Shown: piece after piece, positions 18,392 through 21,300 of the stretch
Numbering within the stretch: the first letter of the stretch is position 1
How the letters are laid out: every line of letters starts with the position of its first letter
Assembly: GCA_964247055.1 (NCBI GenBank)
Contig: OZ176052.1
Location: 7,936,001-8,000,000, forward strand
Direction of reading: 5' to 3'
Length of the DNA stretch: 64,000 bases
Origin: Paragordius varius
Taxonomy: Eukaryota; Animalia; Nematomorpha
Notes under the pieces: generated by a model
Seen by the model: only the letters and a program-made list of their open reading frames with translations
What the model was told of the DNA's origin: nothing
Databases searched by the model: none
Made by a program: the position numbers and the translations under genes

Positions 18392-21300
18392 ATGAAAATT
18401 CCACATTATTTTTTAAAGTATAATCCCGATCCCGAGTTTTTACCTTATGGTTTTTGAAATTTTAATTGTTAGTTTCCTTAACTCTTTGTCAATTTATTGA
18501 CCAATCGCGTATAACAAAAGCAGAGAGCACCGATAATATATTAGAAATTAAGTATTATCTAACTTAACATTAGCGGTGTCGCCTTAAGTAATGATGTTTT
18601 AATATCAAAAATGATTGTTTTGAACGAGTCCCTTAAATTATTTGATGAAAACAATGAGCTAGAGTCCTCTAAAGTTTTTTGATTTTTTATGTAGATTGAT
18701 CATTACATTACTCAATCCTTTTTTATTTACCCCTATATGTCTTCAGAACGTTTAATGAAGACACTAGATAATCTGAATATATGTTTATACGCAAGAAACT
18801 TTCTTGTAATTGATAGATTATCCTTGGCCGATTTTTTTGTATGGTTTTATATTCAAAGTATAATTTTTTCTATGAATAGAAAATCCAAATTATAAAAATT
18901 TGGAAAAAAGCATAAAAGAAAAATTTTTCAATTACCAGACATGGTTCAAAAATGTCTCTGAGATTCCACAAATTAAAAATAATATCTTTACACCAAAAGA
19001 CTCAATTATAAAAGTAATGTTAAATAATAGTTTTAGCGAAGTGTGAAAGAAATCAAGAAGGAAACGCAATTAAACCAACAACCAAAAAGCGTAAATATAT
19101 TTCTAATATTATCTGATTTTTTTTAAATTGATTTTCTTACTGATCTAAGGATTTTTTTATTCCTTTGTCTTTTTTCGGACCTGTGGAAAAACCATAAACC
19201 GTCTGACCGTTTATGAATTGGTTACTATACGGCTATGACCCGTTATGCTACAAATTTATATATATGTTTCACTAAATAAAAAACTAATTGAATTAATTTT
19301 ACATTGGTTTTGATTTAATATGATTATAAAATGAATATTTTTGAAACTCCTTGATATTATAATATTTATATTCTTATTTTTCTATGATACACATATCATA
19401 TGATAAGGATATAAATAATATTTGACTTCTAATTTTTAATGGTGTTCGCTTACAGGCACTGTAATAATAAACTCATAAAATTTAACCCTATTAACGACAT
19501 ATTTTATGTTTAATATTAGAAGAAAAAAGATGAAGGCAAGTTTATTGAATTGCTTGGTGCACAACGTGGCAAGGTTGTTGTACGTTTCCCTCCTGAAGCC
19601 AGTGGGTAAATATAAACATTTAAATAATGATTTAGTTTCAAGTAAAAAAAACTATAAATCATGAATGAATAAGTACAAAAAACCCCTCTTTTGAAAATCC
19701 CTACGATAATAAGCGTTTTTAAAATAAAAGCCCCTATAGTAACTAATTCAAATATAAAATCCTAGTTTTATCTTATAAGTTAAGTTATACCCTCTTACAA
19801 ATTTACTGATGTTTTTGGTATACCTCTACCGAAACAGTCATAATGAGCTTAAAACTATTAAAAAAATTAATAATTATTTTACAATTTTGTAAATTAGATT
19901 AATAGATAATTTAAATATTCAATTAAGGACAAAATATTAATTGTTATAATTTTGATTTTTAAGGTTTATGATGCCGATTATAAACCATATCTCATGATTG
20001 GGTTTAGGTTTTACTGTTATACGGTTAACATTCAAAGTTAATCTATCTAATTTTCAACAAAATCAAAGTTGGACTTTTTTAATGTTAGATACTTACACAT
20101 TGGTCATGCAAAAGCTGCTCTCCTTAACCAATACTATCAACAAATGTATGATGGAAAATTGATTATGCGATTCGATGATACAAATCCCGCAAAAGAAACT
20201 GAGGAATATGAACAGGTATTACTATATATTTTAACAACATTTTTTAACAATTTTTAAGGGTTTTTTCTCCCAACATGGAGGTAACCCTTTGAATCGCTCT
20301 ACCTCATAAGCATAGGTCCTGCGCATCTTAAATTTTCAGATTTAAAATAGCCAGACTGTTTTCCACAATAAGCCAACTTTTCAATGGACGTCCTTTGCGA
20401 TTTCGCAAACTTGTAGAAAATTGACCATGCGATATAGCCAACTTTCATGTGGGCGTCGGTGAACATGTCGTGCAATTCTCAGACGATTTGTGCGCAAACA
20501 GTCGATAAGCGGAGTCATTTGTAGGACAGTATATGGATCAAATTTATCATTGTAGTTACAGAGGTTTAGGTTTGTTGCATAAAGCACATTATTTGAAATT
20601 CTCTTTTCAGCTTGTTGAACTTTAGCGAATTTATTTTGGTTAAAGCTATTGTTCTATTGCGTAAATTTGGTGGTGTACATAGTCGATTTGGATTTGAATG
20701 TCAGGTGTTTATTGTTTGCAATACTTTTGAGTTGGTGATATTTTGATTGACATTTTTTATTTGGTTATTTATAGAAAGTTTAAGGCCACCAGCGCTTATA
20801 ATGTCAAAATATGTGAAACTTTGTACCGTTTTATAAGGTTTTTCATTGCGTATAGTTTGTGGAGGTTGGGTTGGGCGTGGCGCAATTGCTTAATATAAAA
20901 TCGTGATCCAATTTAAGCGATTTCAACTGAAAACATTTTTTATGGACCCATTTTGTACATTTGAGACACTGGATTGCATTGATTTTGACTTCTTTTTTAC
21001 ATATTGAACAGGGCCTATTTATTATTATCGTTCATTAATTTTGTTTTTGATACATTAACCTTAAGGCCAAACATATTTAGCCTTCTTTCCATCTCGTCAG
21101 ATTTGTGTTTAATCTCACTCTTTGCCATTAATACCAAGTCATCAACATGAAGGATAGTGTATGCTAAGCCTTGATCTAAGGGTTTTATAATTTTATCCAT
21201 GATGCTATTAAACATTTCTTCTCTTTATAGAGTACCACCTTCAGATGTTACAAAAGTTTATTTTAGATTTCAAGAAGTAGGTTGTAAGGGGTCCTAAAAT

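Follow-up and report, generated by a model that had tools for sequence, protein, structure and literature searches.

In animals, introns shorter than 30 nt are known only from myxobolids and Dicyema, among 51 animal genomes (PMC13644364, Mol Biol Evol 2026), and hairworms (Nematomorpha) are not mentioned in the main text of that study. The introns of Dicyema japonicum and the myxobolids are of the GT-AG type, have medians of 22–27 nt and carry a reduced 5′ signal, "GTa", together with a weakly conserved A that lies further from the AG in longer introns and is thus anchored to the 5′ end (PMC13644364). Here we analysed a stretch of 64,000 nt from the hairworm Paragordius varius (the window), which has a G+C content of about 26% and carries a metazoan-type glutamyl-tRNA synthetase (GluRS) gene on the + strand. 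Five segments of 21–23 nt at the 5′ end of this gene are very probably genuine U2-type GT-AG introns of an ultra-short class (21–33 nt, with a mode of 22 nt) that would be common in this AT-rich genome. These micro-introns would cut the GST-like N-terminal domain of GluRS into exons of 54–163 nt. They resemble the introns of Dicyema and the myxobolids in their GT-AG ends, in a length below 30 nt, in the reduced 5′ signal and in the 5′-anchored A, and hairworms are, like those groups, a parasitic lineage with an AT-rich genome.

A sequence-only reading of the window had placed introns of 23, 22, 21, 22 and 23 nt in the gene, and GT-AG segments of these lengths lie exactly where it put them. All five start with GT[A/T], end in TAG and have an A at +15 or +16. 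Exon 1 (18392–18449, + strand, as are all parts of the gene; 58 nt) supplies the ATG start in the sole frame that passes all five junctions, and shows weak homology. It is followed by micro-intron 1 (18450–18472, 23 nt, phase 1, GT..TAG, A at +15/+16), exon 2 (18473–18551, 79 nt, an open frame with weak similarity), micro-intron 2 (18552–18573, 22 nt, phase 2, GT..TAG, A at +15/+16), exon 3 (18574–18673, 100 nt) and micro-intron 3 (18674–18694, 21 nt, phase 0, A at +16). Exon 4 (18695–18857, 163 nt) holds the core of the GST-like domain, and exon 5 (18880–19013, 134 nt), beyond micro-intron 4 (18858–18879, 22 nt, phase 1), holds its end. Micro-intron 5 (19014–19036, 23 nt, phase 0), which starts with GTA and runs GT..TTTTAG with an A at +16, separates exon 5 from exon 6 (19037–19090, 54 nt), a lysine-rich linker of 18 open codons between an AG and a GTAAAT donor. 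Left unspliced, the frame from the ATG at 18392 meets a stop after 21 codons and many further stops downstream; with the five segments removed, it stays open over 598 coding nt, to 19100. No in-frame TAA or TAG occurs in the exons, which agrees with use of the standard genetic code.

As a control for chance, 300 dinucleotide-preserving shuffles of 18392–19100 were given, with 30 starts each, to a dynamic programme that removes GT..AG segments freely. None of the 300 matched the open frame of 598 nt, even with up to 10 introns of 18–30 nt; the longest shuffled frame was 326 nt when introns of 21–23 nt were allowed and 500 nt when as many as ten introns of 18–30 nt were. Furthermore, when all GT..AG pairs of 12–60 nt that keep the frame open were considered, the proposed segment was the sole solution at junctions 1, 3 and 4, and junction 2 had one alternative acceptor, giving an intron of 37 nt.

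For homology, the exons were searched singly, joins being used for frames and junction peptides. An N-terminal profile of 33 GluRS/EPRS proteins, obtained from a protein scan with the conserved exon at 24174–24341, was compared with all 3509 six-frame stop-to-stop fragments of the window. The top three matches are exon 4 (E 1e-7, profile positions 82–130), exon 7 (E 3e-6, positions 174–195) and exon 5 (positions 135–159), and they are collinear. From exon 4 to exon 5 the reading frame shifts in the way that a 22-nt intron demands. In the PDB, exon 4 matches residues 78–126 of human EPRS, within its GST-like domain (E 8e-4), and exon 5 weakly matches the equivalent helix of AIMP3, a GST-like protein; the match of exon 4 to Pfam GST_C_3 is below threshold (E 0.024), and exon 3 alone returned only a repeat-protein artefact from the PDB. 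The earlier proposal that removal of the segments assembles a GST-like domain is thus borne out by the PDB match of exon 4 and the collinear profile matches of exons 4, 5 and 7.

In tblastn searches of the unspliced DNA with the homologues P0005 and P0071, exon 3 was aligned over its full length, from 18572, and the alignment continued through exon 4, with a 7-residue gap in the query that falls exactly on the translated 21-nt micro-intron 3. The part of the homologues covered by exon 3 corresponds to residues ~57–90 of P0005, P0071 and P0026. Exon 1 has an NPD motif where other animals have NPP or NPD near the N terminus, and the spacing from NPD to exon 3 in the spliced frame is 33 residues, versus 34 in P0005. 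The closest relative in our protein library, a compact invertebrate GluRS gene on a Logan contig of SRR18067538 (L004; 2694 nt, G+C 40%, 80% identity in a conserved exon), does not come from a hairworm-like genome; its GST-like domain is one open frame, and introns are absent from the positions of micro-introns 3 and 4. Relatives of exons 4 and 9 were sought by word search, with no candidates within the allowed length range, and a search of the same genome for a retrocopy or paralogue of the GluRS 5′ region returned the locus itself only.

The position of one micro-intron is shared with other animals. We mapped the EPRS exon structures of Pieris napi (L005), Hermetia illucens (L006) and Macrostomum lignano (L007), in each case with the protein of the species itself. 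Micro-intron 4 is identical in alignment column and in phase (phase 1) to the intron of 91 nt that follows residue 123 in Pieris napi EPRS, and the alignment is free of gaps from micro-intron 4 back to a conserved LS-x-x-D motif, ten residues upstream. Given this agreement in position and phase with a 91-nt intron of a butterfly, at least micro-intron 4 appears to be an old intron that was shrunk in place, and, as expected of introns of the Dicyema/Myxobolidae type, it occupies a conserved intron position of other animals. Intron 1 agrees in phase with an intron common to the three species, from which it is displaced by 5 residues in the downstream direction. Among the long introns of the gene, intron 7 has the column and phase 2 of the Pieris napi intron after residue 213, and intron 8, at the 3′ boundary of exon 8, corresponds to the Pieris intron after residue 256 (phase 0), which is also present in Macrostomum.

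The same class of intron is found in other genes of the genome. Loci were collected by exon-by-exon Pfam searches of the whole assembly with Ras, UQ_con, Arf, Proteasome and tRNA-synt_1c, and a junction solution was defined as a GT..AG pair that keeps the frame between two homology-anchored blocks and yields as many residues as the profile coordinates predict; since the search was limited to GT..AG pairs, such ends in 50 of 50 introns hold by construction. The resulting sample comprises 50 micro-introns in about 20 genes, the five GluRS introns included, which upholds the earlier suggestion that the GluRS gene adds to a class of micro-introns. The 45 micro-introns outside the GluRS locus lie in Ras, Arf, E2, proteasome and mitochondrial-type GluRS genes and are mostly single solutions, and the spliced peptides agree with strongly conserved motifs, such as those of UBE2D, UBE2N, RhoA, Ral and Rab. 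In length, the micro-introns are distributed as 21 nt (6 introns), 22 (10), 23 (8), 24 (7), 25 (5), 26 (5), 27 (3), 28 (2), 29 (1), 31 (1) and 33 nt (2), 47 of the 50 being shorter than 30 nt. No intron of 34–52 nt occurs in the homology-anchored sample (loci L008–L071: Ras, Arf, E2, proteasome); the next size groups, distinct from that of 21–33 nt, are 53–102 nt (10 cases) and then >200 nt, and the sampled Ras, Arf, E2 and proteasome genes mix micro-introns with introns of 53–102 nt and long introns.

These introns share a simple signature. Intron position 3 gives GTA in 35 and GTT in 15 cases, the last exon base is A or G in 41 of 50, and the overall composition is 47% T, 35% A, 13% G and 4.6% C. 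A TAG end is largely preserved, with T at −3 in 39/50, whereas only "AG" is reported for non-myxobolid myxozoans and Dicyema (PMC13644364). The five GluRS micro-introns fall in the modal length range and share every feature of the class. A census by open-frame logic alone was also tried, with flanks of 15–30 codons, with chained flanks and with a best-parse dynamic programme, and was rejected: it gave no length peak, the control pairs TG..GA, GA..TG and AG..GT gave the same flat background as GT..AG, and the length-maximising parse misplaced boundaries (in the mitochondrial-type GluRS an intron of 23 nt came out as 20 nt).

Micro-introns tend to come first in the two GluRS genes. The mitochondrial-type gene starts with micro-introns of 23, 24 and 22 nt (L002 3101–3123, 3219–3242 and 3438–3459, G000:C5), followed by a gap of several kb between profile blocks, and the cytosolic gene has five tiny introns and then at least 11 long ones, the later introns being roughly 0.3–1.8 kb. 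A similar order, with a short mode at the first intron positions and longer introns later, is seen in the parasitic flatworms Gyrodactylus and Echinococcus (PMC4040987), in which the short mode is ~32 nt (Gyrodactylus), versus a mode of 22 nt and a minimum of 21 nt here. There is one exception to the short-introns-first order: a 31-nt micro-intron near the 3′ end of a Rab-like gene, after a 1367-nt intron (L013 2128–2158, G000:C3:8849629–8849659). Since this intron lies late in its gene, the confinement of micro-introns to 5′ ends is not absolute.

A search for a branch-point signal within the micro-introns, which the sequence-only reading had proposed, returned an A at a preferred distance from the 5′ end. 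Counted from that end, A is present at position 16 in 30 of the 50 micro-introns and at position 15 in 26, and at one or the other in 40 of 50 (35/45 without the GluRS introns, 5/5 within them). The peak A count was reached by 34 of 4000 interior shuffles when introns were aligned at their 5′ ends, versus 942 of 4000 when they were aligned at their 3′ ends, which points to a 5′-anchored A, a putative branch point. In most cases 5–8 nt separate this A from the 3′ end, and AGs that overlap it or follow it by no more than a few bases are skipped, as with the internal AG at +16/17 of micro-intron 5, which the proposed gene model passes over.

These features suggest a scheme in which each micro-intron would be recognised as one unit, by intron definition. 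A minimal 5′ site, [A/G]|GT[A/T], would be followed by a T-rich body with almost no C; the putative branch-point A would be set by distance, 15–16 nt from the 5′ splice site, and the next AG at ~5 nt or more past it, usually as TAG, would serve as the 3′ site. In other words, the branch point may be fixed from the 5′ site, as if by a length ruler. More tentatively, and with less confidence than doubt, two distinct splicing modes could act on one pre-mRNA, a "ruler" mode without a separate polypyrimidine tract for introns of 21–33 nt and a conventional mode for introns of 50–100 nt and of kilobases. In that case introns below 30 nt would have arisen independently a third time among animals, in hairworms, and part of the hairworm "gene loss" and low BUSCO could stem from gene finders that are unable to model such introns. 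The 5′-anchored A offers a concrete, testable model for how the spliceosome handles a 22-nt intron.

From this evidence we infer that the five segments are spliced out, with a strength that differs among them. Introns 3 and 4 are firmly supported and are established as far as sequence alone allows, introns 1 and 2 are probable, and intron 5, the least certain, is plausible. The earlier view that all five are needed to assemble the domain therefore stands in part: the frame is restored and introns 3 and 4 are firm, but intron 5 depends on exon 6 being real, and introns 1 and 2 follow mostly from frame logic. Several points weigh against the five-intron reading. Introns 2, 3 and 5 have no positional counterpart in Pieris, Hermetia or Macrostomum, which are intron-poor in this region, and the branch-point assignment comes from 50 introns and a modest permutation test. 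The other points concern the two ends of the region, where they bear on two alternatives.

At the 3′ end, the gene may have only four micro-introns here, with exon 5 joined to exon 7 through a single intron of 506 nt (19014–19519) and exon 6 being a chance stretch or a cassette exon. Such a skip is in frame, as the end of exon 5 and the start of exon 7 are both in phase 0; six alternative GT..AG pairs keep the frame open at junction 5; exon 6 has no significant homology in the profile search; and by our own calculation an open stretch of 18 codons arises by chance at this base composition in ~20% of cases. Set against this, the 23-nt intron 5 has the full signature of the class, including the GTA start, the A at +16, the T-run and the TAG, a good GTAAAT donor directly follows exon 6, and the linker with exon 6 included is 35 residues long, within the range of homologues. 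We prefer the five-intron structure, with micro-intron 5 as plausible, and regard the four-intron one as unlikely but of appreciable probability.

At the 5′ end, exons 1 and 2 may be a chance open path, with the true start lying elsewhere, in an upstream exon or at an internal start codon. A path from an ATG to exon 3 through two micro-introns of 19–30 nt is found in 4–9% of shuffled upstream sequences, and because of this chance rate frame logic is only moderate evidence for introns 1 and 2. In addition, exons 1–3 alone gave no significant match in the profile search. The GluRS ATG (18392, +) lies only 25 nt from the divergent ATG of ATG101 (18366, −), and the gap (18367–18391) leaves no space for an ordinary promoter or 5′ untranslated region (UTR); with this spacing, either the 5′ UTRs extend into the adjacent gene or the mRNA 5′ ends arise otherwise. 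On the other side, junctions 1 and 2 are unique or nearly so, both introns have the A at +15/16 and the TAG, the NPD motif and its spacing agree with P0005, and a GST-like fold needs ~45 residues ahead of exon 3. A start elsewhere is, in our view, improbable, and exons 1 and 2 with their two micro-introns are retained as the start of the gene.

Paramecium has tiny introns that are reportedly kept visible to nonsense-mediated decay (NMD) by the avoidance of lengths divisible by three (3n). Like those described here, the Paramecium introns are ~20–30 nt long, AT-rich and of the GT-AG type. Micro-intron 3, whose length is 3n, reads GTT TTT TGA TTT TTT ATG TAG and thus holds the in-frame TGA noted by the sequence-only reading as well as a terminal in-frame TAG, and that reading had likened stops in 3n micro-introns to the Paramecium bias. 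If selection for NMD visibility acted here, 3n lengths should be avoided and the remaining 3n introns should bear stops. The 50 homology-anchored introns show neither a deficit of 3n lengths nor an excess of stops: 18 of 50 are 3n (binomial p 0.76 versus one third, in a small sample), and 13 of these 18 have an in-frame stop, versus 13.0 expected from interior shuffles. The stop probability of micro-intron 3 is 1.0, since an intron in phase 0 that ends in TAG carries a stop automatically. The five stopless 3n introns are 21 or 24 nt long and occur in a Ral-like (L008 513–536, 24 nt), a Rab-like (L016 419–439, 21 nt), a RhoA-like (L009 612–635, − strand, 24 nt) and an Arl-like gene (L059 377–400, − strand, 24 nt) and in a proteasome beta subunit gene (L068 386–409, − strand, 24 nt); if retained, they would add 7–8 residues and no premature stop.

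Stopless 3n introns are detectable only as insertions bounded by GT..AG in highly conserved proteins. The statement that all 3n micro-introns carry stops is thus an artefact of ascertainment, because a search that restores a frame cannot see stopless 3n introns, and it should not be carried forward; matches that read through an intron may in turn slightly favour the detection of 3n introns. There is no sign of a Paramecium-like bias here, in an animal, and that interpretation is to be dropped. With a sample of this size a weak bias may remain, but that selection for NMD visibility shaped the micro-introns is very improbable. That the 5′ region is instead a decayed GST-like remnant of unspliced pseudo-exons is scarcely credible: the low conservation of exons 1–3 would fit it, but five exact GT..AG segments restore one frame where none of the 300 shuffles does, no start codon lies in exon 7, and the homology gap falls exactly on intron 3.

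Relative to the described systems, the hairworm introns would extend a known kind of intron to a further lineage. A literature search found no paper that links hairworms with short introns, and the hairworm genome papers examined do not contain the word "intron"; the ultra-short class is apparently unpublished for this phylum. Its presence would add an ecdysozoan lineage to the animals with introns below 30 nt. Unlike those of Dicyema and the myxobolids, the tiny introns here occur, in a genome of 110 Mb, in the same genes as introns of 0.3–1.8 kb, and a reverse-transcriptase fragment lies in at least one of these long introns. Because tiny introns share genes with kilobase-long, repeat-bearing ones, extreme shortening is not simply a by-product of genome compaction. 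Genes of this kind will be fragmented or overlooked by standard annotation and completeness tools that set a minimum intron length, a point relevant to the massive gene loss that has been claimed in print for this phylum.

Downstream of exon 6, intron 6 (19091–19519, 429 nt, phase 0, GTAAAT...TAG) is the first long intron, across which the spliced frame runs on into exon 7. Exon 7 (19520–19605), already identified by the profile, has 76% identity to residues 180–208 of ostrich EPRS; it lacks an in-frame ATG and therefore requires upstream exons. Intron 7 (19606–20088, 483 nt, phase 2) is followed by exon 8 (20089–20215), which carries the HIGH motif and matches Pfam tRNA-synt_1c (E 8e-18). Later exons were located as approximate blocks by tblastn of EPRS proteins and exon-by-exon Pfam searches, at 21606–21794, 22169–22339, 23501–23596, 24177–24341, 25434–25607, 27418–27606, 27917–28081 and 28657–28920, and WHEP-TRS matches mark WHEP repeats at 29673–30170. 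The domain order of GST-like N-terminal domain, class I catalytic core with HIGH and WHEP repeats is that of metazoan-type cytosolic GluRS/EPRS, and the same elements are present in human EPRS1 (PDB 5A34/6IY6). Open frames resembling non-long-terminal-repeat (non-LTR) retrotransposons (reverse transcriptase or tail) lie on the − strand at 21015–21215, within long GluRS intron 8, and at 16874–17134.

Among the Arf loci, extra copies of an Arf exon (L060 and L061; G000:C5:1153677–1156033 and 1127178–1127984) are missing single residues relative to the copy at C5:1291198 and retain the same intron-derived upstream stops; they look like pseudogene pieces duplicated at the DNA level. Two intronless Arf-like genes, each on a small contig, have equal scores (256.6 bits; G000:C10:1742354–1742869 and C11:1307069–1307584), and either duplication or uncollapsed haplotypes are possible. 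The nuclear G+C content matches the 26.9% reported for Gordionus montsenyensis. Finally, a mitochondrial contig (L050, G000:C44:5980–10320) contains zero-spacer palindromes with arms of 131 nt (53–314) and 97 nt (4064–4257), such mitochondrial palindromes being published for Nematomorpha (PMC6649704), and immediately upstream of cox1 (773–1472) it has a tandem array with units 72 nt apart, each with a palindrome of 49–52 nt.

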